Sequence record: PV764938.1
Reading direction: 5' to 3' (one strand)
DNA: 64,000 nt
Part shown: positions 1-18,600 of the stretch, piece after piece
How the letters are laid out: every line of letters starts with the position of its first letter
Position numbering within the stretch: the first letter of the stretch is position 1
Made by a program: the position numbers and the translations under genes
Notes under the pieces: generated by a model
The model's database searches: none
Told to the model about the DNA's origin: nothing
The model's input: only the letters and a program-made list of their open reading frames with translations

Positions 1-191
1 TCGGACATGAGTCCGACTTCACCACCATATAGATCAAGTGCGGTGATCAGTTGAAACTCGTTGAGTTCCTTTAGTCGAGTATCCAAGATATCCAAGCGAA
101 TACTCTTGGGATCACCAAGCTGCTCGTTGGTCAGATAGCAGAAGCTGCAACGGAAGTTACAGAAGTACGTGGGGTTCAAGCTTACTTTCAT
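1..191 (-). CDS. Radical SAM protein, N-terminal part (runs off the window edge)
   Basis: Not in the ORF track. Manual translation from ATG at 191: MKVSLNPTYFCNFRCSFCYLTNEQLGDPKSIRLDILDTRLKELNEFQLITALDLYGGEVGLMS. It has a CxxxCxxC motif and a GGE motif, and an ATGA overlap with the upstream stop. Confidence 0.9.
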   Translation of the reverse strand, partial: MKVSLNPTYFCNFRCSFCYLTNEQLGDPKSIRLDILDTRLKELNEFQLITALDLYGGEVGLMS

Positions 192-1273
192 GCGAGTCCA
201 TTGACCTCCAGGATGTCCGTAGCAAGCGTTTTCATCGTCCGGCAGTGCTGGTCTACCAGATTCGCTTCCTTCAAGTCCTTGACTGTTTTACGGCATCCAT
301 TGCAAATTGCAAACATTGGACAGCTATAGCACTCGTGCTTCATGGAATCCAAATTAATATCGTCCTGCAGCGGTGTGAAAAACTCACCCTCGAGGACTTC
401 CTTTTGGAAATCGATTGGCTTGTCACGGTCATCACCGAAAGCACCGCAACTGTAATAGTCGCCACCGGGCTGAAGCGTACGAATACCTTCGTCGCACTTG
501 CGGTTTTGTGGGCAGATTGTCGGATGATCCTTGAGACGTTTGGTCATCTGCTTCGTGTTGAATTCCCAGGGCGTCAATCCGGCTTTGTGAATGTCCACGT
601 AAATCTTGTAGATCTTCGACAAGATATATGGATTGCCGGATTGTCCCATTTTATGTCCGGTGCGTGGATCCACAATGATGTCACCGGAAGCCATCGCATA
701 ATTGAGTTTACACTCGACGCCATGCTTCTGTCCGTCTTCGTCAATATAGGCGGGTTTGCCGTCGGACATTTCGCGAGCCAGCTCAACGTTCTTGATCGCA
801 AGGTGTTCGTTCTCGTCGGTCACCACGCTGATAAAGTCGGGACGATATCCAACATGCTCAAGCATTGCGTTGGAGACTTCCCATAGATCTTGCTCCGTGA
901 ACAGTGACAAGTCGCCCTTGACACGTCCGGGACCGTAATTGAAGCTAGTTGCGACACCCATACGTGGATGTTGAAACAGCTTGGTCCACTTCTTCGGGTT
1001 TTTCAAGAACGGCCACAAATTGCTTGTGAAGCTGATGCTTGCACGATACTCGTGTTTGTCTAGGTGATCGATGAGTTGCCAGTAATACTGGGGCGGAACC
1101 ATCAGAGGATCACCGCCGTTTACGATGATCGTACTCGTATGAGGGAACCGTTTGAGGAACTGATAAATGCGCTCAAGATCCAACGTCTGCGCGGAATGAG
1201 CAGCGATTTTTGTGCTAGAGCAGAACGTGCATTTGAAATTGCAGAGCTCAGTGGGTTTAATAATCAGGTCCAT
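188..1273 (-). CDS. Radical SAM/SPASM-domain protein
   Basis: CNFKCTFC, GGDP motif, C-terminal CPQNRKC..SCG..CYSCPMFAICNGC..HC. Start moved from 1438 to MDLIIKP at 1273 (GAGG upstream; avoids overlap with the neighbour). Confidence 0.92.
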   Translation of the reverse strand: MDLIIKPTELCNFKCTFCSSTKIAAHSAQTLDLERIYQFLKRFPHTSTIIVNGGDPLMVPPQYYWQLIDHLDKHEYRASISFTSNLWPFLKNPKKWTKLFQHPRMGVATSFNYGPGRVKGDLSLFTEQDLWEVSNAMLEHVGYRPDFISVVTDENEHLAIKNVELAREMSDGKPAYIDEDGQKHGVECKLNYAMASGDIIVDPRTGHKMGQSGNPYILSKIYKIYVDIHKAGLTPWEFNTKQMTKRLKDHPTICPQNRKCDEGIRTLQPGGDYYSCGAFGDDRDKPIDFQKEVLEGEFFTPLQDDINLDSMKHECYSCPMFAICNGCRKTVKDLKEANLVDQHCRTMKTLATDILEVNGLA

Positions 1274-1280
1274 TTTCGCC

Positions 1281-2189
1281 TCAGTAGGACTCGTACGTTT
1301 CCAACTTAAACATGCTCTCGATACGCAGGAGGTCATCGTAGCCGGGATAACCGGCTTCACCAATCTTCGTCTTGAGCTTTGCCACTGGGATACGGCCGCA
1401 ACAGGATAACGCATATACGGGATCAAAATCCGGATCAAGGTATTTTAGCGGGCCGATATGATCGTAGAAGTATTGAATAAGCTCGGCTTCAACTCCACCG
1501 AGATCCTGCCCGAAGGGGATCATGAATCCGCTGCCCAGCATAGTCGGAGGACCGAAACGCTTGAGCTTGACAGGCTCATAGGCGTTCTCGACTGCACCGA
1601 ATCGCAAGATATTGTGCCACGGCATATCCGCGTAAGTGAGTTCCGCATACACAGTTCCCGGTACGATATCCATCGTCGTAAACTGTAGCCACGACTCATC
1701 AAACTTGCGAGCAAAGTGCGGATCCGGCACATGGATGATTTGCCCGAAAGATGAGCCCTCGTTGCCGTTGTTGAACTCATTGTCCTGCACGTTATCCAAG
1801 AAGAACATTACGCGCTTGAGTGAGTCCATGATCGCCTTGACTTTATAGGCGCGATCGAGTGTTCCGAGTTTTCCCTCGCTCAGCAGCTTGTTGAGGTCAC
1901 GAAGCAATTTTGTTCCATGAGCCGGTTTCAGTTTACCGAAGGGCAGCTTTTGGAACTCGTGATTGATCTCTGCGAGTTGATTTCGGATCGTAGACCACAG
2001 GGAAACCGCTTGCTCTTTTGTCGAGCAGAATACCGCATCCGTCAGATGTAGCGGGTTATCCGTAGGATTGGCAATCGAATACTCAAGCATATCACGCCAA
2101 GCCACCGCCGGTGGAGTATCCAGGAATTCCCATTGTGCGGAGACCTTGCTGTTGTCTCCAGCATCGAACATCATATTCAAAATGCTCAT
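1281..2189 (-). CDS. Hypothetical protein in the radical SAM operon
   Basis: 302-aa ORF coupled by ATGA to the 116-aa ORF; no family recognised. Confidence 0.8.
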   Translation of the reverse strand: MSILNMMFDAGDNSKVSAQWEFLDTPPAVAWRDMLEYSIANPTDNPLHLTDAVFCSTKEQAVSLWSTIRNQLAEINHEFQKLPFGKLKPAHGTKLLRDLNKLLSEGKLGTLDRAYKVKAIMDSLKRVMFFLDNVQDNEFNNGNEGSSFGQIIHVPDPHFARKFDESWLQFTTMDIVPGTVYAELTYADMPWHNILRFGAVENAYEPVKLKRFGPPTMLGSGFMIPFGQDLGGVEAELIQYFYDHIGPLKYLDPDFDPVYALSCCGRIPVAKLKTKIGEAGYPGYDDLLRIESMFKLETYESY

Positions 2190-2536
2190 CGGAATCTCTC
2201 CTTCAGCTCTCGGATAAATTCCTTCTGGAAATTCTCATGGCCGGAAATATCGACGGCGGCGAAGTTCTTCACCTTGTCTCGATTGTTGAAGACGAAGGGA
2301 ATCATCTTGTCGTCCTGTACGAGCTTCAAGTAGTTCTCGGTTGTGGGAACCAACTGAATCAGGAATGCTTGGTAAAATGGAATGTTCTGTTTCTTGCGGA
2401 TAATCCCAATAACGTGTTCGTCAAAGGATTTGTGGACACCTAGGATGCACCGATCATACGGATACATCACAGTCAGTCCGTATTTGCGAATCTCGCTTGC
2501 ACATGCGTCCAAGTAGCTTGTATCGTCATCGAACAC
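2186..2536 (-). CDS. Hypothetical protein in the radical SAM operon
   Basis: 116-aa ORF overlapping both neighbours on the same strand. Confidence 0.75.
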   Translation of the reverse strand: MFDDDTSYLDACASEIRKYGLTVMYPYDRCILGVHKSFDEHVIGIIRKKQNIPFYQAFLIQLVPTTENYLKLVQDDKMIPFVFNNRDKVKNFAAVDISGHENFQKEFIRELKERFR

Positions 2537-3623
2537 TTTTCACCTCGCTGATCTTCCGGTGGACGTCCTTCATCCAACAATCGTTCATTGTTCGATTGGG
2601 GCCATTGAAATGCTGTTGCAGGAAACATCCGAGACCGCAGCGGCTAAAATATTCGCAACTCAGGCAATCCATCTTTGTGATGAACTCGCCTTCCATTTCG
2701 CCTGCCGTCTTCGGAGCAACTTCCTTCTGAAAATTATTTAAGAGAATCGTGCAACGACCAGCTTTACCATCGGGCATAATCGTGTAGGTGCTCTGACAGC
2801 TCATCGCATTGGTTTCGTTCAGCATCCATCCGGTGATCGGATGCACAAGCGGATAATTGTCGGTCAAGAACACATACATGTCACGGAGTTCATGATCCTT
2901 CGGGCTCATAAGCTCGTGATTGGCTTCCGGTGTATAATAGTCGAAATACACTTCGAAGTGTTCGTAGATATAGTCGAAATGCGGAATATTGCGGGATAGA
3001 AACTTACGAATGTTCGGCGCAGTCAACACGACGTTGACCACGCTGATGTAGTCCTTGTAGATCTCCAAGTTCTTCGCAAAAATGATCAAGTCCTTTGCGG
3101 AGAAACGCATGGATGGATCGTAGCTGGTGCCCAAAGTGGTCTTTGCACCAGTCGCATTAAGCGTGTCGATGAGCGACTTTACCGCTTGCGTGTTGAAGTG
3201 AACCAGGTTGCTAACAAATACAAACTCAACGGGATACCCCATCATATCGCAGAAATCACGGACGTCAAGAACCAACATGAGGTAGTCCACATATTGCTTC
3301 TCGGTGAATCGATCTTGGAATACTTCTCCACCCATGAAGTGAATTGAGAAGGTCTCTTTGCGCATTTTCTTCAGCAATTGGATCGCTTTGATAACATCCT
3401 GGGCTTTGCCACGGATATTATCGATGCCGACTTCGGAGTCGTGATCCTGATTGCAGAACTTACAGGACAAATTGCAATGCTCGAATAGGGTGACAATGAT
3501 TTCGCCCTGTGTGCTGCGCTTTTTGCTCAGCAGGGTGTCAGTCATTTCAACGATAGGTTTAACCGAGGGATCGATGTCATTGATACTAATGACATCGTCA
3601 CCACCGAATACGAGCTTTTCCAT
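2526..3623 (-). CDS. Radical SAM/SPASM-domain protein
   Basis: CNLSCKFC, GGE, C-terminal CQSTYTIMPDGKAGRC..CLSCEYFSRCGLGC..DC. Start moved to MEKLVF at 3623 (GGA upstream). Confidence 0.92.
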   Translation of the reverse strand: MEKLVFGGDDVISINDIDPSVKPIVEMTDTLLSKKRSTQGEIIVTLFEHCNLSCKFCNQDHDSEVGIDNIRGKAQDVIKAIQLLKKMRKETFSIHFMGGEVFQDRFTEKQYVDYLMLVLDVRDFCDMMGYPVEFVFVSNLVHFNTQAVKSLIDTLNATGAKTTLGTSYDPSMRFSAKDLIIFAKNLEIYKDYISVVNVVLTAPNIRKFLSRNIPHFDYIYEHFEVYFDYYTPEANHELMSPKDHELRDMYVFLTDNYPLVHPITGWMLNETNAMSCQSTYTIMPDGKAGRCTILLNNFQKEVAPKTAGEMEGEFITKMDCLSCEYFSRCGLGCFLQQHFNGPNRTMNDCWMKDVHRKISEVKSVR

Positions 3624-3624
3624 T

Positions 3625-4404
3625 TTATTCCTGGAACTGTTGGGCTTCGTAACGAGCTGCCTGTTCAAGCATCGCAATTGGGTCGTACTCTGCGGTACCC
3701 ATCGCGTCGAAGATCATCGGCAGCGGGTTCGTTTCCTTCATGAAGTGGAAGAACAGATTCTGTCCACCGAACATGTAATCCTCGAACTGCTTTGTGAAGT
3801 AGAAGAATCGCTGACCCGGAACACTGAAGAACAATTCCATGAACTGTGGAATATCAAACAGTTGCACGAAGTTATTGCCGACAACATGCTCATCGTCAAT
3901 GTTCTCGTACTGTTCCTTTGCGTTACCGAAAGCATCAGTGAAGCCCTGGCTTGCCTTCATCGTGTAAACGATCATGGAGTCCATAAAGATAACCCACTTG
4001 GAGACCATAATCTGGTTGTCCATGATGAACTCAATGATTTCCTCTGCATCGAGAATTGGGTTCTCGATGTTGTGATAGAAGTCATTGATGTCTTTAGCGG
4101 CCGTGAGAATAGAACCCACAGTGAGAGCCAAACTAGGGCAACCCAGAAGATTGCGGAAGCTCATGTACTCGGCGATCAGATCGAAACGTTCCTGTTTTGG
4201 AATGTCACGGCTGACTTTGAGATCGCATGGGATTTCCAAGTTGCTCAGATATACGAGCAACTGTTTTCCCTTCAACGCGCTTGTCTCATAGTCCACGATG
4301 AACGCGAGTGCTTCATCGGAGAAACTCTTCTGCAGATTCTCCATGCTGATCGGAGCAGGAGTTTCAATAAGCTGAGCTGGAGTTTTGTTAGACAAATCAA
4401 ACAT
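3625..4404 (-). CDS. Hypothetical protein in the radical SAM operon
   Basis: 259-aa ORF with AGGA RBS, between the CHxS-tail protein and a radical SAM gene. Confidence 0.85.
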   Translation of the reverse strand: MFDLSNKTPAQLIETPAPISMENLQKSFSDEALAFIVDYETSALKGKQLLVYLSNLEIPCDLKVSRDIPKQERFDLIAEYMSFRNLLGCPSLALTVGSILTAAKDINDFYHNIENPILDAEEIIEFIMDNQIMVSKWVIFMDSMIVYTMKASQGFTDAFGNAKEQYENIDDEHVVGNNFVQLFDIPQFMELFFSVPGQRFFYFTKQFEDYMFGGQNLFFHFMKETNPLPMIFDAMGTAEYDPIAMLEQAARYEAQQFQE

Positions 4405-4413
4405 GTAGGTTCC

Positions 4414-5334
4414 TTATCGACGGCTACGGCTGCTATGACACGAAGCGTGGCACGATGTGTGGCAATAATCCAAGATAATAGACGCCGTGTAGTTCTTGGA
4501 GTCAAGCCAAATGTTCTTCATACGTTCGAAAACTGTGATCAGAGTATCCGCTGCAATGACAGCACCCTTCGGGTCAGGACCACCGCCCTGGCCACCGGAG
4601 TCAATACGAGGACCACGAATCGGGTCACCTGTAATCGTCCACGAAACCGTGATATAGTCGAGTGCGCTTCGGAATGGTTCCGCAAAGTGCGTGATGCCCG
4701 ACTTCGAACCCTGCTGGGAGAATGTATACCACTGCTCGACAGTTACGAGCGTGTCACCCTTTACGGGGATTTCAACACCATCGAATGTATGCGGATACGT
4801 CTTGCTGTTGTAGTCGCGATCCGTAATTGCCATACGCTCAGTGATCGTTCCCTTACGGATCTTGGAAATAGCAGATGTGTGCATGGCAATGGCGTGTGCA
4901 ACCGAGCTCTGAATACTTGCTGCTTCTGTTCCGGGAACACCAACACCGGTACCACCATTTGTGTCCCAGAAGCTTCGCTGACCATCAACACGGTCGCCGG
5001 AGTTCTGTGGAACTTGACCGTCATCGGGAAGGTCTGACTTTGGTCCGCCTAGAACGTCAGTGAGAACAATCTTTGCGCCGCCCTTCTTGAAATAGTGCGG
5101 AACATTGTTGACGGGAATCACTTCCGAGAAACCCTGCGGAGACGGATTCTGCGAGTCCGCAATACCCAAACGGTAAACGGTCTTCAGCGGATCCGCTGCA
5201 TTGTCCTTGTGGAATTGGATAGCCGCTTCGACTTTACGGACGAACTCCAAACGGAACTTTCCGAGAATGTCGTCGTATGCGGTAGGAGAGGTTTCCTTCG
5301 CATAAACTACTGAACCTTTTGTAGGATTCGCCAT
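4414..5334 (-). CDS. Protein with C-terminal (CHxS)3-RSRR tail; candidate radical SAM substrate
   Basis: 306 aa ending YCHTSCHASCHSSRSRR; start overlaps the stop of the upstream radical SAM gene (TAATG). Substrate role is inferred. Confidence 0.8.
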   Translation of the reverse strand: MANPTKGSVVYAKETSPTAYDDILGKFRLEFVRKVEAAIQFHKDNAADPLKTVYRLGIADSQNPSPQGFSEVIPVNNVPHYFKKGGAKIVLTDVLGGPKSDLPDDGQVPQNSGDRVDGQRSFWDTNGGTGVGVPGTEAASIQSSVAHAIAMHTSAISKIRKGTITERMAITDRDYNSKTYPHTFDGVEIPVKGDTLVTVEQWYTFSQQGSKSGITHFAEPFRSALDYITVSWTITGDPIRGPRIDSGGQGGGPDPKGAVIAADTLITVFERMKNIWLDSKNYTASIILDYCHTSCHASCHSSRSRR

Positions 5335-6404
5335 TAATCTCTCTCCTGTAGAAATTTGTCAAACAGATCGTAATCGTTCACTGTTTTCAAATGTTTAATT
5401 AGGCTTTTCGGGCTTGCACACACATTGCCCTGCCAGAGCATCTGCTGACAATCGCCATTGCAGATATCAAATACTGGGCAACTATAGCAGGCCGGGTTTC
5501 TGAAACTTTCACAAGCAATCTTCTTCATACGACCAGGGTTGTAGAAGAGATCCTTGATCTCCATTGACAGCGTACCGTAGTTATTTACTGGAGCATCGTT
5601 CGGGCAACCACCAATGGAACCATCGGGATTCAGTGTGAACATTTTGGTTTCACAATTCCTGCAGAATACGCCACCGGTATAGCCGCGATTGAACTTTTCC
5701 AGGAGACCGTTCATGAACACATTCATTGGTGCCCATTCCCAAGCCTTATGCTCAACTGATTGTTCCCACATACGCAGGAACCATGCGTCCATTTCAATAT
5801 TGCTGGGGAAGATGCTGTCGTTGCCAATAGCATTCCCGTGCGGGGTGAGTCGTTCCAAGCTGATGTAGCGGACACCCAGATCAGCCGCCATACGAAGCAG
5901 CTCGATGGGTTCCTTTTGGATCGTATTCCGAGACAAGCTCACCATCAGCGTTACATCGAAACCCTCATCTACGAGAGTCTTGACGTTCTTGCGCCATAGT
6001 TCTTCTTGCTTCTCGTTCTCGAAACGAATGCCATCATCCCAAGACGTGGCAATAGTGTTGCTGAATGCTTCCTTCATGAAGCTCAGCTTTTCTTCGTCCA
6101 AGTTATAGGTCAGGTTCGTGCAAGCGGAAAACCGCATGTTCGGGAACAGATCCTTTGTGGCTTCCCAGACCTTGCGCATATGGCTAACTGGAGCCAAGAA
6201 CGGCTCACCACCGTGGAACTCTACAGTGACATGTTGGAGCAAGGGCTGTGCTTGCTTCAAACGTTTGAACCAATCGATTGTATGAGTCGGGTTGAAGTAA
6301 ATCTTACGACCCAAACGACCACTCGTGAAACAATGATCGCAATTGAGCTGGCACGTTTCCGTAGTCTTCAGGTATATGTGGAGTTGCTTGAGCATGTTAT
6401 CCAA
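5334..6404 (-). CDS. Radical SAM/SPASM-domain protein
   Basis: CQLNCDHC, HGGEP, C-terminal CRNCETKMFTLNPDGSIGGC..CYSCPVFDICNGDC..VC. Confidence 0.93.
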   Translation of the reverse strand: MDNMLKQLHIYLKTTETCQLNCDHCFTSGRLGRKIYFNPTHTIDWFKRLKQAQPLLQHVTVEFHGGEPFLAPVSHMRKVWEATKDLFPNMRFSACTNLTYNLDEEKLSFMKEAFSNTIATSWDDGIRFENEKQEELWRKNVKTLVDEGFDVTLMVSLSRNTIQKEPIELLRMAADLGVRYISLERLTPHGNAIGNDSIFPSNIEMDAWFLRMWEQSVEHKAWEWAPMNVFMNGLLEKFNRGYTGGVFCRNCETKMFTLNPDGSIGGCPNDAPVNNYGTLSMEIKDLFYNPGRMKKIACESFRNPACYSCPVFDICNGDCQQMLWQGNVCASPKSLIKHLKTVNDYDLFDKFLQERD

Positions 6405-7014
6405 TCAGTGAGGGCTGATCTGCCCACAGCATTTGAGTCTTGACACGTGGCTTGATCGAGCCAGTACCGAAACTGATCATTACGGAATCTTCGACGTTGG
6501 TTGCACAATGTTTCAAACCCTCGGGCATGAACAGCCAATCGCCATCTTCTAGTGTGTAGGTTCCGGATTCAGTCTCCATCGTTTTGGTGCCGGAGACCAT
6601 GTAACACATGACATGACCTTCATCCTTGTGCCATCCAAAAGAACCTTGATTTTCAAAGCCAATGAATAGGTGACCGTTTACGGTCTTACCAACGCCGGCT
6701 TCAAGATCCGCTACAAGATCCACAAGCTCCTGGTTGTATGTTTCCATGTCCTCAACCTTAATTGGCCAGCCATGGTATTGGGCGATTCCCAGCATATCGA
6801 ACTTGTTTTTGATGCCTGGGAAGTCAGCGATGCAATCGGTTTGCCAGAAGGTTCCATCCGAAAACAGCTTGATGATATAGGTTTCACCACTCTCGAGAGT
6901 TGCCATGTTCGAGGCAATTGCAAGCGGGTTCTCCGGGAGATTCAGCTCGACCGGGTGATGAAAGTGGAATGCTTCAAACTTCTCGAAGCGTTCGAACTCA
7001 AATGGAAGTGCCAT
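6397..7014 (-). CDS. JmjC/cupin-like Fe(II)/2OG oxygenase
   Basis: GSFGWHKDE (HxD), GTKT, LEDGDWLFMPEGLKHCA (distal His), typical of the cupin_4/JmjC double-stranded beta-helix. Confidence 0.8.
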   Translation of the reverse strand: MALPFEFERFEKFEAFHFHHPVELNLPENPLAIASNMATLESGETYIIKLFSDGTFWQTDCIADFPGIKNKFDMLGIAQYHGWPIKVEDMETYNQELVDLVADLEAGVGKTVNGHLFIGFENQGSFGWHKDEGHVMCYMVSGTKTMETESGTYTLEDGDWLFMPEGLKHCATNVEDSVMISFGTGSIKPRVKTQMLWADQPSLIG

Positions 7015-7041
7015 TGCCTTGTCCTTTATGAAACCGTTCCT

Positions 7042-7071
7042 ACACTACGTGGTGCGACACGGACAAATCAA
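7042..7071 (-). promoter_or_regulatory. Sigma70-like promoter for the radical SAM operon
   Basis: TTGATT-18-TAGTGT on the minus strand, 27 nt upstream of the JmjC start and downstream of a terminator. Confidence 0.45.
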
Positions 7072-7084
7072 TATTCTTGCGACT

Positions 7085-7108
7085 AAAAAGGGCCCCTTGC
7101 GGAGCCCT
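7085..7108 (-). terminator. Intrinsic terminator after the tail fibre gene
   Basis: AGGGCTCC-GCAA-GGGGCCCT followed by a T run on the minus strand. Confidence 0.85.
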
Positions 7109-7131
7109 CTTTGTGTTAGTTTTGTGGGCGC

Positions 7132-9012
7132 TTACTTGGAGCCCACAACGCACAATACGGTGCCTTCTTCGTCGGTTAGCTTATCAGCGAGTGCGCGACC
7201 AACAATCAAATGTGCGGAAACTGTTGCCAGTTCTGCATCATCCAACGCAATCGCAACGCCTGGAATGTCCGAGAGAACCAAACGCTGACCCTTACGGATT
7301 TTACCGATCAAACGAACCGGAACACGTCCCGAAAGCGCAACCGGTGGGTGAGTGTGGTCAGGACCCGCACCCGAGTTAAGCAGGAAGCCTGGCTGTGTCG
7401 AAACAACACCAAAGTAGTTGATATCGTCGGCACCACTTGTCTGTGTGACTTCCTTCTCACCACCGAGGCTTACAAGAGTTCCCTTCGGATAGAGATGGTC
7501 GGATTCGTAACGTTCCGCCAAGTCAGCGTATCGTGTCTTAGTTGCTTCACCATCAAAGACGTTAGCGTAGATTGTGCCCCAACGCTGACCCGCGTTACCC
7601 ATGTCGTGCTGGCCAGTTGGAACCGACGACTTATCAAGTGGAACAAACGAACCCTGTGGAAGTTGGCTAACAACGTCGCCTGTTACTTCTTCAGCGATTG
7701 CCTTGACTGCGTCCTTACCCTGCTGGGTGAGCATCGCAGTACCAACGTAATCGTTTGCTTCTGTTGCAAATAGATCCGTGAAGATGATTTCAACGTCGCT
7801 GGTTGCGGCTTCAGTCTTCAGAGACTTAGCTGCGTCGAACATCTTGGCCTTTTCTGCTGTGTCACAGAGTTCAGCCTTCTTGGCCATACCAAATACGTTG
7901 ACTTCGGAAATGTCTGCTTCACCATCTGGATCAGAGTCACCAGCGTAGACATACTTGGAGAAGAAACGCAACCAGTGCTGTGCCTTCGAACCAAGATCCA
8001 ACACGATGTCTTCTACGATTGGGGCAGTGTCAACGTCTGAGCGCAAGAACTGCGAAGAGTTCAAACCATTGAGACGTTCTGCGTCCGATACCTGGCCGTT
8101 AAAGATCATTGCAGCATCGTGGTTCTGGTTAACACCAGGCTGCAAGGTCAAGCTCGTAGCGTCGGGATCGTATGGGTCAGCCCATGCACCGAAGTCCATT
8201 CCCTTGATCTTGTTCTCTTTCAGCTTGACAATCTGCGGAACCCAAACCGATACAATCTTACCATCGAGGACGACCATGAACATGTCGATTTCGATTTCTT
8301 CGCCAGTCGTCGGGTCAATAACAGTTTCCTTAGTAGTTTCAGTCCATGAACCACCATTAGGATCATTTGGATCTTGGAGACCCTGCGGCCCAATAAGAAC
8401 CCAACCATTCGGAACAATAGAACCATCAACGCGCTTTACCTTCGGAGGGAACGATGACAACGATTTCAGCGAGGAGTCGAATGCCCACAGTTTACGTTCA
8501 GGAAGCATCCACCAAAGATCACCTTCACTTGGGTTCGGCGGAGGAGGAACAATTTCGTCATCAGGAAGTTCTGCAGGATCTGTACCACCAGGAACACCCG
8601 TGTAGGGACCACCGACCTTCTTCCACTGGTAACCATCCCAGTAGTAGATTGTGCTGTCTTCGATGTTATACCACAGGTCACCCGGCTCTGGGTTTTCCGG
8701 TGGGTTTACAGAGCTCTGCGCACCACCAACGTTAATCCAAGTTGTACCATCGAACACCTTCAGCTTATTGACAACCGAAGGAGGCGGGCCCGGATCGAAA
8801 GTGTGGAACCATGTCTGACCCTGTAGTGGGTTAGCCGGTGGAGTTGGACTCGAAAAGGATTCCAACATGTGAACGAAGTTCTCAGCAACAGACTCACCGT
8901 AATCGACAGTACCGCGACCAAGCAGAGTCAAGCTTGTGGTTTCAGAATCTCTTGTAAAGTCCTGGACATTAGTGAGCAATGTCCCGTCTGTACGATTAAT
9001 TGAATATGGCAT
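7132..9012 (-). CDS. Tail fibre/baseplate-attached protein with C-terminal peptidase G2-like chaperone domain
   Basis: Three PxNPxxGxxW motifs and Pro-rich linkers; C-terminal YADLAERY..VVSTQPGFLLN..VALSGRVPV motif. Confidence 0.7.
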   Translation of the reverse strand: MPYSINRTDGTLLTNVQDFTRDSETTSLTLLGRGTVDYGESVAENFVHMLESFSSPTPPANPLQGQTWFHTFDPGPPPSVVNKLKVFDGTTWINVGGAQSSVNPPENPEPGDLWYNIEDSTIYYWDGYQWKKVGGPYTGVPGGTDPAELPDDEIVPPPPNPSEGDLWWMLPERKLWAFDSSLKSLSSFPPKVKRVDGSIVPNGWVLIGPQGLQDPNDPNGGSWTETTKETVIDPTTGEEIEIDMFMVVLDGKIVSVWVPQIVKLKENKIKGMDFGAWADPYDPDATSLTLQPGVNQNHDAAMIFNGQVSDAERLNGLNSSQFLRSDVDTAPIVEDIVLDLGSKAQHWLRFFSKYVYAGDSDPDGEADISEVNVFGMAKKAELCDTAEKAKMFDAAKSLKTEAATSDVEIIFTDLFATEANDYVGTAMLTQQGKDAVKAIAEEVTGDVVSQLPQGSFVPLDKSSVPTGQHDMGNAGQRWGTIYANVFDGEATKTRYADLAERYESDHLYPKGTLVSLGGEKEVTQTSGADDINYFGVVSTQPGFLLNSGAGPDHTHPPVALSGRVPVRLIGKIRKGQRLVLSDIPGVAIALDDAELATVSAHLIVGRALADKLTDEEGTVLCVVGSK

Positions 9013-9695: not shown

Positions 9696-12600
9696 TTATA
9701 CCGTCGGACCCGGCTTACCAACGTTAGCTGCACTCCACCATGTCTTCCAGTTCTTCGAGAAGTCCATTGTGGAATGTGCTCGCATGTTTGTCGTGTTGAA
9801 CGTGAGCAGCGCGTGTAGAACAGAACCGTCGAACACCTTAGTGTTGATCGGAGCATCGATCATGCGCGAAGTGCCACCTGTACCACGACCCAGACCTGTG
9901 AGTGTGAACGTACCGTCACCGTTATCAACGACACCAGTATAGGTGATACGCTCAGTGCCAACCCAAACAACGCCATCAACATAACGACTCAGGATATCGT
10001 TGATACGAGCCTTCAAAGCTTCTGTAATATCAACGTTATCAGCTATAGCGACTGTATATCCAGGCTCAGTTGGGTGCGGCTGTTGCCACAGAGCGTCAAT
10101 ACCCAAGCTACGGTAAATACCCAAAATGCGTTGTTCTTCAACCACGTAACCAATTGGTTTGTATTTGAATTTGATTGTTCTAATATTGTCTTCGACTTCA
10201 TTAGATGTGATGGAAACTACCTGACCGATTGCCAAAGTGTCTATTTCAGACGCGTTAGCCAAAACCAAGTCTTTACCATTTGGTGATTTCTTTAGCAAAT
10301 CACCAACAGACAACGAGAATGCAGGATCCACCTTGAATTCATAACTTACATTGTTTGGACGCTTTGCTTTCAGATCTCCAACAGTGAGTGTTTTTGGATT
10401 GCCATTATTATCAGTGAAGCTAACACCAATGCTGAGTGCGACCTTTGCCTGCAATTCTGCAAGATTCGGATTTGCCGGGTCATGCAGCGGGAACAGACCA
10501 GGAATTGCAACGCTCATTGTCTGATCCGCTGGCATCAACGGAGCCGATAGTGCGATACCATCTTCCTCGAGGAATACACCTTCCCAAGCACCAATCGAAT
10601 CCTTGAAGAAACGGAATGCTGTGGGCTGTGTTGTTGGCATATCACCCTGCGATGTCGCCTGACGATAAACAGTCATCATCAGAGGATCACGAACACGCAA
10701 GCGAACAAGCTCGTCTGGATGACCACCATCGAACCAAGGCTGAACTAGCTCACCACCTTCGAGGCGAATGTCTTCGACACTATTAGAGTCTTCCCAGTTG
10801 CTCTGGTTCGGATTGATGTTCAAGTCACGACCCACGTAGTATTCGTACTCGTTTGCCCAACCCGTCTGGTAATCCCATGCGAACATGTCCCAGAGACCCT
10901 GGCCTAGATCAGCGCCATCAACGACTGTGCCGCGGAAATCACAACCACGAATCAACGTGTCGAGTTCCTTGCGCTTCATTGTCGCACTTGGCTCGTAATA
11001 GCGTTCGATGCGATCGGCGAGGCCACCATTGATGTTCATGTCCCAACGAACGTTGTAGAACTCAACGAACTCGGTTCCGCTCCACATGTAAGCGGCCGGA
11101 TCACGATCAGGACCAACCTTCACGTTGACGATATCGCCTCGGTTGATCAGTGCTTGTCCACCCGCGTTCACAGCATTCTGCGAATCACGAACCAACTGAT
11201 CACGCAGAGTTGTCGAATCAACAACCAGCTGCTGATACTCTTGACCCGGAATACGATACAGATCTTCGAGTTCACCGAATGTCTTCGTGTATGCGCCGTG
11301 GACCCAACGCTGTTCGTTACCATCCCACGGAACTTCCGGAGGAGACCAACCAACAATCGGGCTGCACGATACACGATCGAACAACATTGTGATCTGCGGA
11401 CGACGAACAGGATTCCACTTGTCGTCCCAGTTCTCTAGCGTGTAGTTGGTCTTCTGGTAGTTTTCGTACCAGTGACGCATCTGAGGATCCGTACGAAGCA
11501 CAAGCTCATCAGCTGGAACCTTCACGTCCAGCTTGCGCCAGCTTTGTGTGGTTTCATCGTAGTAGAGTGGCTTGTCGAAGTCAGTGATCGTCAAGTTCAT
11601 GTGTTCCATTGGTGGGCTCAAGCGACGAACAAAATCACGTACCTTAACGTGGTATGGCTTCACATCATTGATGTAAGACAAGATGTTGTCGATTTGATCC
11701 TTGAACACGATCGGGCTCTGGTTCAACTGCTCGTTGTAGCCGGCCATGTAGAGGAACGATGTCTTGAAGACCCAGTCCGTATAGTTGTGCTGGGAGACCG
11801 CAGTCTTTACCATGCTGAAGAACAACTTGTTACGTTCCAGAGACGTCAACAGCTTCGTGCGAAGTTCTGTGAGCAAGTATTGGAGTTCCCAAGAACCATC
11901 ACGCTTCTTCGAGCTACCAACCTTGTAATCGTTGAAGCCGTAGACCATCATGTTCTTCGCGTAGAAGTTGTCGTTCAGGCGAATCGTTGCCTTCTCCTTA
12001 GCGACCTGAATCCAGCTGCCATCCTTGTAGACGTACCAAGCCCAACGAGGATCTGTTGGACCCTGAGTATCGACTTGAACAAGTGTTCCACGGAGCAGAG
12101 TTGTGTCGAGCTTCTTATCGGCATCACGCTCTTGACGAGTCGCATAACGCTTGACTGGGAAGTCGTTGATGCTCCACTCTGGATCGTACCAATCCACAGC
12201 CTTCCACATCTCACCCTCACGCATACGATAACGCTGAGCCTTAAACAGAACGTAACCGGTTTCGCTTGCACGAGCATCCGATGGCAAATAGATCCAAAGT
12301 GTCCAGAGACCGTTTGTCTCAGGAGTACCCTGCATGAATACCTTCTGACCCGCCTTCACAACGCCAGTTGCGGAAAGCTGATCACGCTCAAACTCGTCAA
12401 CGACTTCGAACGCATAGGAATTTGCATCGGGCTGTGGCTCTTCCGATTCGAAGATCTCACGCCATTCGTAACGTGTATCCAAGAATGCTTCGCTTGCGAA
12501 GATTTCATTCATTGTGTCAACGAAAGCCTTACGAGCTTCGCGACCCGGAATGAGGAATCCATACTGGTCAACATCCGACTTGAACCATGTCTGGCCTGGA

Positions 12601-15600
12601 CGGCTGAGAGCGCCGTAACGCTCACGCTCGTTGAGCCATTGATCAGGAACCTTACGGAATGCTTCAACTGTGCGAGTCTGATAAACCTTAGAACCAACAC
12701 CGAAACGCAGAGTACCAACGCCGGTCAGACCAACAAAGGTGTTGCCGTTCAGGTATTCGTATTGGATCCAATAGTCACCGATCTTGACTTCGCCTGACGG
12801 GTCAAAACCAGTTGCATCATCAACCGTGAAGCTTGTGGACAACGAGTTCAGTTCAGTTGTCAGCGAACCAACAAAAGTCTTGCGCTGAGTATTGTTGTCC
12901 CAACCAACAAGCGAGTCACGCATCTTGATCCAGAGGGATTCGTCGATGTTGTTGCGCTCATCGTTTTCACGAAGCAGCTTGTATTGCTTGTGGACAAGAC
13001 CATCATTCGCAGACTTCTTCCACTCGATTTTCAAGCTTGTGGAGTAATCGTTCACGTATTGCTTTGCACCACCTACGAGAACCTTGTTCGTGTCAACAAT
13101 TGCGAACCATGGGATATCAGCGGATGTTGGATCCTGAATGATCGTCGCAATCTGCATTGCTGTGAGGTTGCGATCTTCACGGAACGGAACAGTGGCTGAG
13201 TTGCGCACCCAGAAGTAATAGACAGTTTCGTTGCGGCTCAATTCTTTGTTGTACTCGGTGCGCTCAACCCAGCTTGCGTTGGTGTTGATGTCCTTGACAG
13301 TACCCGTAGGCTTGTGCTCATCGGAATCAACACTGACGTTACGCTTCTTCTCGACTTCTGCGGACCAGAACGCCGGAGCAACCGTCGAACGTGTCCATTC
13401 GTAGATGTCGATTGTGATGCCCGGAGCCAACTTGCCCCAGTTCTTCCACTTGTATTCGGTTTCGCCGATTTCGTAGTCCAAGTAACGAGTCGTAGAGATA
13501 TCCCACCAAATGTCACCGACCTTAGCAGAATCCCAAAGACGTTCATTCGAGTTGATGCTCTTCGCCAGCGGACCATTCGAGTAGATAGCGGGATCGTACT
13601 CCAGAATATAGGAGATTTCGCGCTTTGCCGAACCCGGGATAAAGCCCTTGAATGGATCGTAAAGCTGAAGCGTCTGTAGTGTTTCCGATGTGTTTACGTC
13701 GTAGATCACTGCGGACTCAACCATGTGAGTATCGATCTTCGGAGTTTCCTGGCGAATTTCCTGCCAGATGGCACCGTCGATGGAATCCATACGCTCAAGT
13801 ACGCGCCAACCCGTTACAGCTTCCGAAGCAACTTCCCATTCCTGGGCAACGAATGCATCTGTTGTAACGCCATGCGTTGTGAAGCTCATTGTCGCTGTTG
13901 TGTAGTTGGTGCCGCGATTCGTCATTACGATCGCCTTAATGCGAGCTGGCTTCATAACGCACTCGAACACTACTGGAGTATCTGAGGCATCATTGACAAC
14001 CGTTACGATCGGCGCTGCGTCATAACCCCAACCTGCATCCAATACGATTACTTCTGTGATCGCACCGTTTTCTACCTTGCTGATACGAGCCTCTGCACCC
14101 TTACCCGACAGGTTCTTCGGAGTAATCAAGAGCTTCTCAGTTCCAGTGTAACCGATGTTTGCCTCAGGGTTCATGACCTTGATTTTGTAGACGCTTGTCG
14201 GAGCAAGCATCACATAAGCGGCAGCATCTTCACCATCACCGGTGATTGTTACGGTTGGCTCGTGTGTGTAGAGCGTGCCCTTGTCCGTGATTACTGGACG
14301 ATCCAGTGACTTGATGTCGTTGTCTTGTGGAACAATCGAAGCCTCAAGACCCGAACCAGTCTGGATTGCACGGTAAACAACACCATCGCGAGTGATGAGT
14401 TCATGATACTCATAACGCTCACCAGCAGTCCATTCCACAGCACGCTCAAGTGTCGAACGACCATCATCCAAGAGGATACGGTCACCGAGCTTCCAATCAT
14501 CGACTGGGATCAACAGCGGATCTTCTGGACCCTCATTGTTGTCAAAGCGTACGGAGTTCCAAGCGAAAATGTCGCCACCGGAACCTGTGATGCTTGTGCG
14601 AACTGGATTGTCGTCGGCATCGAATAGTTCGAAACCACTGGTGTAGTGGTAATCAACTACCAGCGTGAGTAGACCATCGCTTACACCATCGCTGTTGTAG
14701 AATGCGACCATCTTGTTGTCGCTGTTGATGCGCTCGTTCAAGTAGAACGGCGTACGAGTACCAGCAACCTTCAAGTCGATATCGCGTGAACCAGCAACTG
14801 TGTTGTGTACGGTTACCAGCGAACGCGTCGATGTTCCGATAACGCCGTTTGTTACGTTCTTTGTCGTAGTTGGTTCACCAGTTGTCGTATCCAGAACATA
14901 CTCGGGGAATTCAACCTCGTAAGTGGTACGTTCGTCAACGCTGGAGATTGGCAATTGTACGCTCTGCACGTAGAAGTCCGGCGAGTTAGTTCCAGTCGGA
15001 GCAGGGAACTCAATTGGTGTGCTCTCATAGACCCACTCGTTTACGTTCTCGGCCGTTGCAGGCTCGATTACGCGGTGACGCCATTGAGCCATAACTGTTG
15101 GCTCCAGAGTCTCCGGAGTGGATTCCAAAATAGCCTGTGCAGGTGCACCACCGTTTGGTGTCTCGACTGTGATTGTTGATTCACCACCAACCCACGAGCA
15201 CTTACCCCAATCCGTAATTGTGATGCTGCGAACAGTCCACAACATGATTGGTTCAACAGTTGCGCCTTGGCCACCACCACCGCTTACAACGACACGTGGC
15301 TCAGTGAGATAACCATCACCAGTGTAGGCGTGGAACTTAACCTCAGGAGCACTTGCGTAACCGGCACCGTTGTAATCGATGAGAACCGCAGTCACTACAC
15401 CGTTGGAGATTTCTGCCTTAACCGCAGCGTGCGATGTTGGGTTACCGCCTTCGAATGTTACGAACGGACGCATTTCCCAGCCCGAACCACCTTGGAGATC
15501 CGAAATACCACCAACGCCACCAGCGTTTAGGTTTGCTGTTGCGGATGTTCCAGTACCTGCGCCTGGGATTACGACTGCATCAAGCTTTTCGCCATCGAGG

Positions 15601-18600
15601 ACAGCCGTGCCCTTAGCACCAGTACCGCCGCCACCGATAACAGTGATCGTCGGAGCACTCGTGTAACCGGTGCCTGGGTTGGTCACAGCATAACCGATGA
15701 TAGTTCCAACAATATTGGCCTTCGCTTTGACTCCAGTTGGTCCTAGGACCGTGATCTTAGGCTCGCTTGTAGCTGCATAGCCCCAACCAGGATTCGTTAC
15801 TGTGATCGCGCTAGGAGTCACGAATACGTTTCCGTTGCGAACCAAACGAACAGTTGCGGCTGTATCGTCTTCGTTCAGGACAATTGTGTCATCGTAGACG
15901 TTGACTGTGATTGGGCTCGAATACGAGAACGTTGGACGACCCGGAGCCGGCTTCACGCTGCGGAAAGCAGTCGAAGAGTTGACCGCACCGATGAAACGAT
16001 CTGTTTCAGTGAGTGTACCAATTGTGATCGTCGGGTTGTTTCCGGCTGGGTATGTGAATGGACGAACAACCGAAGCCGTGATCTTGTTGATCACGATACC
16101 CGAGTCTGCCCACAGATCCATGATCGGAATCTGTACCAACGAGTTACCATTGTTGCGAAGTGTTTGACTTGCATCGATGAAGATCTTTGCGCTGTTCTTG
16201 AACTTCGCCTTGTAGGTGTTCAGAAGCATTTCCGTTGTGTTATTGTCCGGCAGGATACCATCGAGGATGGTCTTTTCCATGCGTGCTTCTGCCTGTTCAA
16301 TATCGGTCTCGAACGTTGGGTTCAAGCTTACGATTTCCGGACGAGGCTCCTGCGGGTTGTGATCGATACCCAATGCATCAAACATGTTGACGTTTGTGGA
16401 AACTACCGTGCCCTGAGTAGAGAAGCTCTGCGGACGAGTCATGTTTACGTTTGCGGATGTATCACCGAAACGGAAAACATTCCAATCACCATAACCGGTG
16501 TCGTAGACCCATGTGCGATCACCCGGCAATACGATTTCACCGACGAGTTCCAGATTAGCCGTAACTGTCATCTGACCCGGTGCAATTGCAAGACCAGTTG
16601 CCTGAGTCACGAACACATACAGAGCATTCTCATCGTTGAGCTTGCTGGTCAAGTATTCGAATACTTGATGTGTGTAGGTCTGGAGCTTATCGGTCTGAAC
16701 CGAAGTCTTCTCCATGAACTTCTCGGGCTCAGCGATAGTACCGATGGAAACGATTACTTCGGCTTCGCCAGCTTGTGTGAGTGGGAATGCTTCAACAATG
16801 TCAACGACAAAGTTCTTGATTCGGTACATGCCCTGGGACAGGTTCGGAACAATGTTGATCTTACGTGGTGCAGTAGAAGATTCCGCATACTTGATCGTTA
16901 CGGTGTTCGTGATCGCAGAGGATGGTTCCTCGCGCTGGATTCGACGATACAACGCATTGAAGTTGTTCATTGTGGTTGCAGTCCACTGAACATCATCCAG
17001 ATGAACGTAGCCGGCCGATGGCAAGTTGCCCTTCTGCTTTGCCTTAACATCGATGAGCGGCCAATCCGGATTCTGTGTGGAATGGCGCCATACCCAACGA
17101 GGATCCTTGTGCATGAATTCGCCGGTCTCGTTGTTGAACAAGTCGTAGATCTTTGTTGCCTTGTCGTCTTCAGTCGCAACAAACAGACCCGTGTAATAGT
17201 TCGGAGTAAACTCGAACGTGAATGTGATCTCCAGGTTACCGCTGTCCTGTGCATTTGTGATGTATGCGGCAACCTCTAGAGCGGCATTCGAGATCTGCTG
17301 GCCATCATCGAGAATCACAGTCTTCGAGCTACGAGTAGCCAAGTTGACTGGACCGACATAACGAGCATTGTCGTCTACGTCGCCGATTGTGAGCTGTGGC
17401 TGAACACCGTTGAACTCATCGAGAACCTTGATCGTGAAGGACTTCAGGATGATTCCCTCAACACGCTTGAACTTTGCAAGCTCTACGATGCCGTTTGTTG
17501 GCGGATCCTGGAGCGTAACAGATGCGGTTGCAGGAGTTGTTGGGTTACCACCGACGAACTCAATCTGCGGTGCAGTTTCAAAACCGCCACCACGATTCAA
17601 TACTTCAACACCGCTGATCGAACCACCAGTTACGGTAACCTGTACGATTGCGCCAGTGCCTGTACCAGTGAAGCGAACGCTAGTTGCTGGATCATATCCG
17701 GAACCTGGGTTGCTTACTGTGATAACTGTTGCGCGACCACCGGAAACCTTAACGCCGATACGACCTGCTGCCGTGAAGTTGAAGTTCGGGAACAGAATAT
17801 CACCAACGCCTTCGTAACCAGCACCTGGGCTTGTCAACGTAAGTTTTGTAATTGCACCGGTTTCAGTAACTTCGGAGATCACAGCCTTTGCGTTTCCGTT
17901 ACCACCAGCGAATCGGATTTCCTGACCCACTGCATAACCGGAGCCAGCACCTGTTGTACCTTCCTGCGGAATAACATAAACCGAGAGGATCTTGGAAGAG
18001 TCAAAGTTGACACCGGTGACTCGTGCAGCCGCACCGAAGCCTGTGCCGTCGATTTCAACGACGTCGCCTTCGAAGAAGCCTGTGCCACCCTTGAGAACCT
18101 TGAGCTCAGCAATACCGGAGTTCTTCCAGTTTAGGATTGCCTTGAGCGATGCACCCGAAGTGTCGCCGATTACGTTAACAGCCGGAGCCTCAAGATAGCC
18201 AGCACCGACGTTGGTCATCTTGACCTTCTTGATGCCGTTGATGCTGTAGGTCGCACGAACTGTTTCTACGTTCTTCAGGTAATCCCAGTGATCAGCATCC
18301 CAAGCCAAACGCAAGTCCCAACCACCCTGACCGGAGCCGTTGAATTGGAACATTTGCGGGCTGTTCTTGAAATCACCCTGCTTGATCAGGAAGTCCATGC
18401 TTGGACGGATCTCGCTTGCACCGTATTCACCAATACGGAAGCCCCACTCTTCAAGAACATTCAAGCCATCGTTGTGGCGAACAAACTTGCTGCGGAACAG
18501 CTTGCGCATTGCAGAGATCGTACCCTTCTGCTGGATAACACCCTGGTGGAACTCGAATTGGTTCGTAGGTGTCATCAACAGGTTGCTGAGGTATTCCTTC

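Follow-up and report, generated by a model that had tools for sequence, protein, structure and literature searches.

Here we describe a short C-terminal tail, three Cys-His-x-Ser units followed by Arg-Ser-Arg-Arg, on a 306-residue protein encoded by the minus strand of Phosso, a Sinorhizobium jumbo phage with a 469 kb genome (PV764938.1). The gene lies in a 64,000-nucleotide stretch of this record, referred to below as the window, whose positions 1-9000 correspond with 100% identity to record positions 186001-195000. We found that the tail is a conserved feature of a phage particle protein and that a class of radical S-adenosylmethionine (radical-SAM) enzymes is tied to it almost without exception. 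Cross-linking by radical-SAM enzymes is known mainly from small secreted peptides and, lately, from a few whole proteins: HxsA, CrpA and a subunit of quinohemoprotein amine dehydrogenase. In our judgement it is rather probable that the tail is a core peptide which is retained on its protein and cross-linked there by the radical-SAM enzyme encoded directly upstream (rSAM_A) and by paralogues of that enzyme.

Conservation of the tail

Translation of 4414-5334 on the minus strand gave a protein that ends D-Y-CHTS-CHAS-CHSS-RSRR-stop, in agreement with a preliminary description of the window made from its letters. That description had placed the motif at 4414-4467, and the span is exact because Y290 is encoded by 4465-4467 and the stop codon occupies 4414-4416 (C291 and R306 lie at 4462-4464 and 4417-4419, respectively). 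It was also right that the motif holds the only Cys of the protein, at residues 291, 295 and 299. A degenerate DNA pattern for (C-H-x-x)x3 occurred once in the window and in 0 of 100 shuffles, and no C-H-x-S repeat was found in any other six-frame open reading frame (ORF) of the window. The further claim that the repeat is written in varied codons holds in part. It fails for units 1 and 2 of the Phosso gene, which share their Cys, His and Ser codons and form a weak 12-nt repeat (2.2 copies, score 38; Tandem Repeats Finder); it stands for unit 3, whose codons differ throughout from those of the other two, and it stands among homologues. In 66 distinct tail DNAs all synonymous codons are used at every conserved residue, both Ser codon families included. 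Selection therefore acts on the protein, as had been proposed.

A word-indexed search returned 20 full-length homologues, all on large phage contigs, and in their alignment the tail is the best-conserved stretch of the protein. D289, C291, H292, S294, C295, H296, S298, C299 and H300 are invariant in all 20, down to 29% identity; the orthologue of Agrobacterium phage Atu_ph07, with 42% overall identity, has the terminus FCHSSCHASCHNSRSRR. When 1.8 billion cluster representatives were searched with a profile, 197 matched, about seven of them full length, and the others, mostly of ~190 aa, align over the last ~50 residues only and have the same tail end. Across 153 family tails the Cys columns are 100% conserved with invariant C-x3-C-x3-C spacing, the His columns are 99-100% conserved with Tyr as the sole substitute, and the Ser columns are 88-94% conserved with Asn as the main substitute; the middle residue of the C-H-x-S unit is free, and R-x-R-R precedes the stop codon in 97-99%. 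In the last unit, position three is Gly in 44%, Ser in 36% and Asn in 10% of family tails, with Ala rare and Pro never seen. Loss of these residues in homologues, which would have spoken against the preliminary description, is thus not what the alignment gives. Outside the tail, identity is ~25% and family lengths range from ~60 to 470 aa. Nearly all members (163 of 166) have their terminus at most 8 residues past the third unit, and among these 163 there are 115 with no further Cys.

The number and make-up of the units vary in some members. Four-unit tails occur in L099, P0121 and P0157, and in P0020 and P0022 other residues stand in the place of R-x-R-R. In one lineage (L105:5047-5688, L106:5047-5724 and L107:5047-5724) the tail reads C-H-x-x, C-H-S-S, H-S-S and then R-N-R-R, so that the third Cys is lost and the third H-x-S kept; these loci retain the radical-SAM gene and that of a conserved partner protein, PHROG 20767. 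The profile of PHROG 35144, a family of phage proteins with no assigned function, matches the 306-aa protein over residues 260-306 only (E=1.4e-4) and short relatives over 80-130 residues. Mini tail proteins of 126-140 aa are encoded at four loci (L090:5758-6530, L095:5327-6144, L096:5776-6611 and L085:5932-6312), in two tandem copies at three of the four; those of L085 and L090 stand directly behind fibre-like ORFs and ahead of divergent ORFs with the motif CX3CX2C.

We modelled the protein with AlphaFold2 (AF2) from the family alignment. The model has a confidently folded alpha/beta domain to about residue 290 and then a tail predicted to be flexible (predicted local distance difference test, pLDDT, 82.6; predicted template modelling score, pTM, 0.80), with pLDDT <50 over the last 12 residues, 295-306. 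In the model of a short family member the secondary-structure elements come in the same order, and the tail, drawn there as a weak helix, is again of low confidence. Neither model had a PDB fold neighbour better than E=0.35 in Foldseek, and a fold search of BFVD returned family members only. Sequence searches of Pfam, NCBIfam and PDB with the 306-aa protein and the family alignments gave no match.

The family is found in jumbo phages that infect Sinorhizobium, Agrobacterium, Ralstonia, Burkholderia and Pseudomonas, as well as in uncultured phages of aquatic origin, which number in the hundreds. Among bacteria and archaea, at one genome per species (185,579 genomes), only nine loci were found, all on contigs of metagenome-assembled genomes (MAGs) with the same module. 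The full phage module is present on the MAG contigs L093-L100, which bear labels such as Bdellovibrio, Rhodobacteraceae and Gemella and probably come from phages whose contigs were binned together with bacterial genomes; the tail system is essentially phage-only. A pattern scan of the collection for the C-H-x-x repeat extended by D-[Y/F] gave four loci, two of them by chance. L004, a chance match in a short antisense ORF, and L005, which lies antisense to a low-complexity repeat of Ser, Arg and Asp in the bin of a giant virus, were rejected as family loci.

Linked enzymes and presence in the particle

On the minus strand of Phosso the genes run in the order fibre-like 626-aa protein, cupin, rSAM_A, tail protein, PHROG 20767 protein, rSAM_B, two small proteins of unknown function, rSAM_C and rSAM_D. 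At the junction of rSAM_A and the tail gene the stop codon and the next ATG overlap (TAATG), and the PHROG 20767 gene begins 9 nt past the tail-gene stop. To count from the substrate side we used 79 IMG/VR loci with a tail ORF. A radical-SAM gene lies within 6 kb of the tail ORF at 78 of the 79 and directly upstream on the same strand at 70; PHROG 20767 is present at 75 (directly downstream of the tail gene in 61) and the cupin at 66, and all three occur together at 64. The misses fall mostly at contig ends. Counted from the enzyme side, a tail gene lies at most one or two genes away from nearly every one of the best 80 rSAM_A orthologues that has enough downstream DNA. The most divergent loci, L085 and L090, have four CX3CX2C ORFs beside their tail genes. 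The preliminary description had guessed that paralogous radical-SAM enzymes stand beside the tail gene; they do, and the linkage is near-obligate in both directions.

The block of cupin, rSAM_A, tail protein and PHROG 20767, adjacent or one gene further, recurs in Atu_ph07, on a 67-kb Logan contig whose tail protein (P0043) bears a tail-fibre domain, on small metagenome contigs, in Ralstonia phage RSL2 and its Ralstonia/Burkholderia relatives, and in Pseudomonas phage pPa_SNUABM_DT01. Among these, Atu_ph07, the group RSL2/RSF1/FLC6 and pPa_SNUABM_DT01 are isolates unrelated to one another. Phages RP12 and RP31 have no tail gene. In the literature on jumbo phages with radical SAM, SPASM or virion as a subject we found gene lists only and no functional study of the module.

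One published virion proteome, that of Atu_ph07 (PMC6102473, Supplementary Table S5), covers a member of the family. It lists gp170 at 31.89 kDa, which is the computed mass of the Atu_ph07 orthologue (31,894 Da), and the gene numbering is consistent for gp176, gp177 and gp180-182. This protein was detected in gel slices 1-9 (8 unique peptides, 35% coverage) and was most abundant in slice 1, as are proteins of 76-139 kDa; other well-supported proteins of 28-36 kDa peaked in slices 7-8 or lower (PMC6102473). Its presence in virions and its peak in slice 1 therefore identify the tail protein as a particle component that belongs to large species, either very stable or linked covalently. The products gp171 (rSAM_A), gp172 (cupin) and gp169 (PHROG 20767) are absent from the virion list (PMC6102473), and the enzymes therefore remain in the cell, outside the particle. 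Two other proteins of 32-36 kDa, gp321 (2 peptides) and gp616 (1 peptide), also peak in slice 1 (PMC6102473).

What kind of enzyme is encoded next to the tail gene? In rSAM_A the three Cys of CX3CX2C (residues 18-25; C18, C22 and C25) are invariant and eight C-terminal Cys form a full SPASM pattern, with C248, C267, C306, C309, C315 and C319 invariant and C251 and C329 at least 90% conserved. This is the Cys pattern of the SPASM radical-SAM superfamily; the TIGR04085 SPASM domain is borderline (26.4 bits vs a cut-off of 27). An N-terminal recognition domain is absent, and there is no room for one. NCBIfam scores are weak (PapB 45.1 bits, DynA 44, HxsB 37, DarE 36, anSME 32, cyclophane synthases 21-29, against cut-offs of 310-650), the scores being 5-15% of the cut-offs. 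A profile of 24 rSAM_A orthologues matched in PDB only SPASM enzymes that modify peptides or proteins (8vpo, CteB, anSME and ChlB); it is collinear with anSME over its full length (14-320 vs 14-334), and the ChlB match (28 bits) covers only the N-terminal core. Because the NCBIfam scores are this weak and the PDB matches are solely to SPASM modifying enzymes, rSAM_A is predicted to be a peptide- or protein-modifying SPASM enzyme outside any described family.

In the cupin, H129, D131, H169 and K144 are invariant and constitute, in a cupin fold, the H-x-D...H iron triad and 2-oxoglutarate-binding Lys of JmjC-type oxygenases. Pfam JmjC_2 scored 22.1 bits against a cut-off of 22, and beyond generic cupins the PDB profile matches were to MINA53 (3.8e-6), NO66 (6.6e-4) and JMJD5, which are His- or Arg-hydroxylating JmjC ribosomal oxygenases. 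The protein is therefore probably a JmjC-type Fe(II)/2-oxoglutarate oxygenase. No Pfam or PDB relative of the PHROG 20767 protein was found.

The tail as a probable cross-linking substrate

The closest parallels to this module are the HXS system in its logic, the His triceptides and the CXXX-repeat peptides or ranthipeptides in their motif, and anSME in its enzyme architecture. The bacterial HXS effector blocks the entry of phage DNA in the periplasm. In this anti-phage system the effector, HxsA, contains HxS repeats and is matured by the radical-SAM enzymes HxsB and HxsC together with HxsD, and the His and flanking Ser of one unit are essential and bear a radical-SAM-dependent covalent change of +8 Da (PMC13128918). 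Like the phage module, it comprises a whole protein with tandem H-x-S units, rich in basic residues, beside paralogous radical-SAM genes, and both belong to the setting of phage entry into the host. In the phage tail, three H-x-S units indeed stand next to radical-SAM genes. The HxsA repeats, however, lack an invariant Cys and a fixed four-residue period, and the phage module has the cupin and PHROG 20767 in addition. The HxsA model (TIGR03979) had no match at E<=1 in the 306-aa protein or in 60 short family members, no Pfam domain, including the HxsA-type peptidoglycan-binding domain, was found in the tail protein, and HxsD had no match among the module neighbours. Among the phage enzymes HxsB scored at best 36.7 bits vs a cut-off of 370, and HxsC 15-26 bits vs 268.

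In the triceptides, HaaB and HtkB make rings from His C2 to the C-beta of the third residue on H-x-x motifs (PMC11499958). The phage tail is similar in its aromatic (His)-x-Ser units, three in number, in their free middle residue and in their tandem C-terminal arrangement, and substitution of His by Tyr only and of Ser mainly by Asn is in line with the aromatic-x-x rule of triceptides. The preliminary description had likened H-x-S to the targets of radical-SAM enzymes, and the likeness is genuine for both the His three-residue cyclophanes (PMC11499958) and HxsA (PMC13128918). In contrast to the phage protein, triceptide precursors are short peptides with leaders, and the invariant Cys of the phage tail has no counterpart in them. 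Cyclophane-synthase models scored 21-29 bits (YhhB 28 vs a cut-off of 445, FxsB 28 vs 370, AmcB 27 vs 425, GrrM/OscB 23 vs 310, XyeB 21 vs 450).

Thioether systems (PapB ranthipeptides and CXXX-repeat peptides) share with the phage tail a Cys at every fourth residue and a SPASM radical-SAM enzyme, and a whole protein, CrpA, is modified with thioethers by the SPASM enzyme CrpC (PMC13692751). Here the preliminary description was correct in one respect: the C-x3-C-x3-C spacing that it compared with these substrates is found in all 153 tails, whereas the enzymes score far below the PapB and TIGR04115 cut-offs. PapB is the best NCBIfam match of rSAM_A, at 45.1 bits vs 340, and the CXXX-repeat maturase TIGR04115 reached 21.4 bits vs 350; no CXXX-repeat precursor in NCBIfam matched the tail family. 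Furthermore, the phage tail differs from thioether systems in that neither Asp nor Glu stands at the spacing usual for an acceptor, in that its His and Ser are as conserved as Cys, and in the lineage that lacks the third Cys. With anSME, rSAM_A shares a minimal radical-SAM core with a full SPASM domain and no recognition domain, and anSME acts on whole proteins, as proposed here for rSAM_A. On the anSME model TIGR03942, rSAM_A and rSAM_C scored 32.4 and 43.1 bits, respectively, vs a cut-off of 349, the Pro/Ala position of the anSME target C/S-x-P/A-x-R is not kept in the tail, and the phage protein, unlike the anSME target, is not a sulfatase. Judged by profile scores, then, membership at the family level fails for HXS, triceptide, thioether and anSME systems alike, and holds only for the superfamilies of SPASM radical SAM and JmjC-type cupins and for PHROG 35144.

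The motif and its conservation, the class of the enzymes, their gene linkage, and the virion presence and anomalous gel migration of the orthologue are observed; that the tail is a substrate, by which bonds it would be linked and what a modified tail would do are our inferences. We take it for a substrate of the linked enzymes because its residues are fixed at each position, it is flexible and terminal, the number of its units varies, it is carried on N-terminal parts of unrelated length, and it is almost never found without the translationally coupled radical-SAM gene. The SPASM radical-SAM enzyme, translated in coupling with the tail, would bind the flexible last ~16 residues, possibly anchored by the terminal R-x-R-R, and would take a hydrogen atom from a side-chain carbon to give covalent side-chain bridges inside the C-H-x-S units. 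The most likely chemistry would be one three-residue ring per unit from His (C2) to Ser (C-beta), with the Cys entering thioethers or left free for interchain bonds. The radical-SAM paralogues, the JmjC-like cupin and the PHROG 20767 partner would add to this maturation or assist it, and the cupin may hydroxylate His or Arg. The product would be a small, rigid, positively charged knot ending a baseplate- or fibre-associated protein, which would be built into the particle without the enzymes. R-S-R-R was previously suggested to be either a recognition or a cleavage signal. A cleavage that releases a downstream part does not agree with its position, because it sits at the extreme C-terminus and nothing lies beyond it; it may serve in recognition or anchoring, or provide a patch of charge.

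Several observations weigh against such a substrate role. All module enzymes fall below the curated cut-off of every characterised maturase family (best 45 bits vs 340), and the gene linkage could be explained by co-assembly or another shared role. The clusters contain 3-6 radical-SAM genes and several oxygenases for one recognised candidate substrate, and therefore some or all of the enzymes may act elsewhere. The sample buffer of the Atu_ph07 virions contained sodium dodecyl sulphate and was heated at 95 C, and no reductant is named (PMC6102473), so that the high-mass gp170 may owe its position to plain disulfides. In addition, three Cys and three His are also a good set of metal ligands.

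The last point leads to an alternative that we regard as rather unlikely: the tail would be an unmodified tip in which three Cys and three His, of one chain or of an oligomer, hold Zn, Fe or Fe-S and stabilise the end of a fibre or spike, with the enzymes acting elsewhere. Metal ions held by His motifs are a known feature of phage spike and fibre tips such as those of P2 gpV, phi92 gp138 and T4 gp37, where the motif is H-x-H in beta-helices, without Cys or dedicated enzymes. These proteins resemble the tail protein in their C-terminal, repeated, ligand-rich motif and in being virion proteins of the baseplate or fibre region, and the tail gene lies within a baseplate/fibre gene cluster; a Foldseek comparison of the tail-protein models with PDB found no structural match to spike or fibre-tip proteins. 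That Cys and His are the invariant residues, that most members have Cys nowhere else, and that the weak AF2 helix of the short-family tail would align positions i, i+4 and i+8 all suit a metal site. However, it leaves unexplained why Ser is 88-94% conserved with Asn as its substitute, why His changes to Tyr only, why one lineage has lost a Cys and kept H-S-S, and why a translationally coupled radical-SAM gene is near-obligate; tails of the metal-chaperone type also usually vary in length and order, and this one is fixed at each position. The pattern of substitutions (His to Tyr only, Ser mainly to Asn) and the Cys-lost lineage that keeps H-S-S argue, on sequence grounds, for a part of His and Ser in the chemistry over pure metal ligation.

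Two other alternatives take the Cys as the reactive residue, and we consider each of them very unlikely. In one, an anSME-like reaction would convert Cys to formylglycine, and the aldehydes would react with amines of adjacent virion proteins to give covalent high-mass complexes, in keeping with the peak of gp170 at the top of the gel. The collinearity of rSAM_A with anSME, both without a recognition domain, the 43 bits of rSAM_C on the anSME model, and the resemblance of the last unit plus Arg (C-H-x-S-R) to the C-x-[P/A]-x-R target are consistent with this, yet Pro never and Ala rarely occupies position three of the last unit, the scores are far under the 349-bit family cut-off, and the invariant His is left without a role. 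In the other, interchain disulfides alone would hold the protein in large assemblies of the virion, and the tail would undergo no radical chemistry. The smear of gp170 over slices 1-9 with its peak in slice 1, from a buffer that lists no reductant, and the confinement of Cys to the tail would fit, but the conservation of His, Ser and R-x-R-R and the linkage to the enzymes are not accounted for, and disulfides are unusual in proteins of the bacterial cytoplasm. It is barely credible that the tail is the classic core of a ribosomally synthesised and post-translationally modified peptide (RiPP), modified, cut from its carrier and released as a small cationic peptide: its C-terminal position, variable unit number and many tailoring enzymes would suit this, but family-library searches recognised no protease or exporter in the module, and the carrier, in some cases joined to a tail-fibre domain (P0043), is a conserved virion protein in its own right.

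Modification of the tail as we propose would be a new kind of post-translational modification in virion assembly and would account for the puzzling presence of 3-12 radical-SAM genes in many large phages. It would also provide a natural, abundant and easily purified substrate on which to work out how His-x-Ser systems react. Were it unmodified, the tail would still be a new motif of phage tail structures, one sharply defined and based on metal or thiols. A bolder idea, which we hold to be unlikely, is that RiPP-type chemistry ties the end of a structural protein into a knot of radical-SAM cross-links and so builds a part of the virion instead of a secreted peptide. As the HXS effector uses the same His-x-Ser radical chemistry, the knotted virion part and this effector could then meet as opponents or mimics at the same step of infection.

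Features and neighbouring genes of the locus

The features of the window discussed here are collected in Table 1. No broken genes were seen in the module. The ORF 3451-5037 (+), of 528 aa, was rejected as a gene; it is antisense to three conserved minus-strand genes and has no homologues.

Table 1. Coordinates of the tail, the module genes and adjacent virion genes in the window, with the basis of each assignment.
Feature	Position	Strand	Basis
Tail-bearing virion protein, 306 aa, XYS97446.1 (GenBank "hypothetical protein")	4414..5334	-	ORF and translation; 20 full-length homologues; Atu_ph07 gp170 orthologue in virions
Tail, residues C291-R306: three C-H-x-S units, then R-S-R-R	4417..4464	-	Translation; 153 family tails; AF2
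rSAM_A, radical-SAM/SPASM, XYS97447.1	5334..6404	-	Pfam Radical_SAM; PHROG 1802 E=1e-73; invariant Cys; PDB profile matches
Cupin, XYS97448.1	6397..7014	-	Pfam Cupin_2 and JmjC_2; invariant columns; PDB profile matches
Conserved partner, PHROG 20767, XYS97445.1, function unknown	3625..4404	-	PHROG E=1e-70
rSAM_B, XYS97444.1 (annotated "oxidoreductase")	2526..3623	-	PHROG 1802 E=1e-46; Pfam Radical_SAM weak
116-aa protein, XYS97443.1, function unknown	2186..2536	-	No family match; orthologue at the same place in L088
302-aa protein, XYS97442.1, function unknown	1281..2189	-	Orthologues in Atu_ph07 and L088
rSAM_C, radical-SAM/SPASM, XYS97441.1	188..1273	-	PHROG 1802 E=4e-57; Pfam Radical_SAM; weak NCBIfam DynA, anSME; annotated start
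rSAM_D start, XYS97440.1, cut by left window edge	1..191	-	Record 185271-186191; weak NCBIfam radical-SAM matches
Tail-fibre-like virion protein, 626 aa	7132..9012	-	PHROG tail-fibre matches; 52% identity to AUZ94958.1, Atu_ph07 gp176 (virion-detected)
Virion protein, 199 aa	9067..9666	-	75% identity to Atu_ph07 gp177 (virion-detected)

Phosso has five radical-SAM genes in ~12 kb (XYS97447, 97444, 97441, 97440 and 97429; window 1-6404 and L001:10940-23465), and pPa_SNUABM_DT01 (L011) has six in a row together with a 2-oxoglutarate (2OG)-Fe(II) oxygenase. At aquatic loci (L021:8301-8930 and 9920-11032; L010:9939-10475) radical-SAM genes are interleaved with ORFs whose C-termini resemble 2OG-Fe(II) oxygenases, and the RSL2 cluster includes a dihydrofolate-reductase-like ORF073. 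Aromatic-rich C-termini in marine loci were considered as a second substrate and rejected, being the usual C-terminal strands of 2OG-Fe(II) oxygenases.

Further along the window, an ORF of 4555 aa (9696-23363) is annotated as a virion structural protein. Its Atu_ph07 counterpart, gp180, also has a structural annotation but is missing from the published virion mass-spectrometry table; the protein may be too large to enter the gel. Finally, a fibre-like gene precedes the cupin at other loci too, for example as a 1001-aa ORF in L021, and the whole module therefore travels with the fibre gene.

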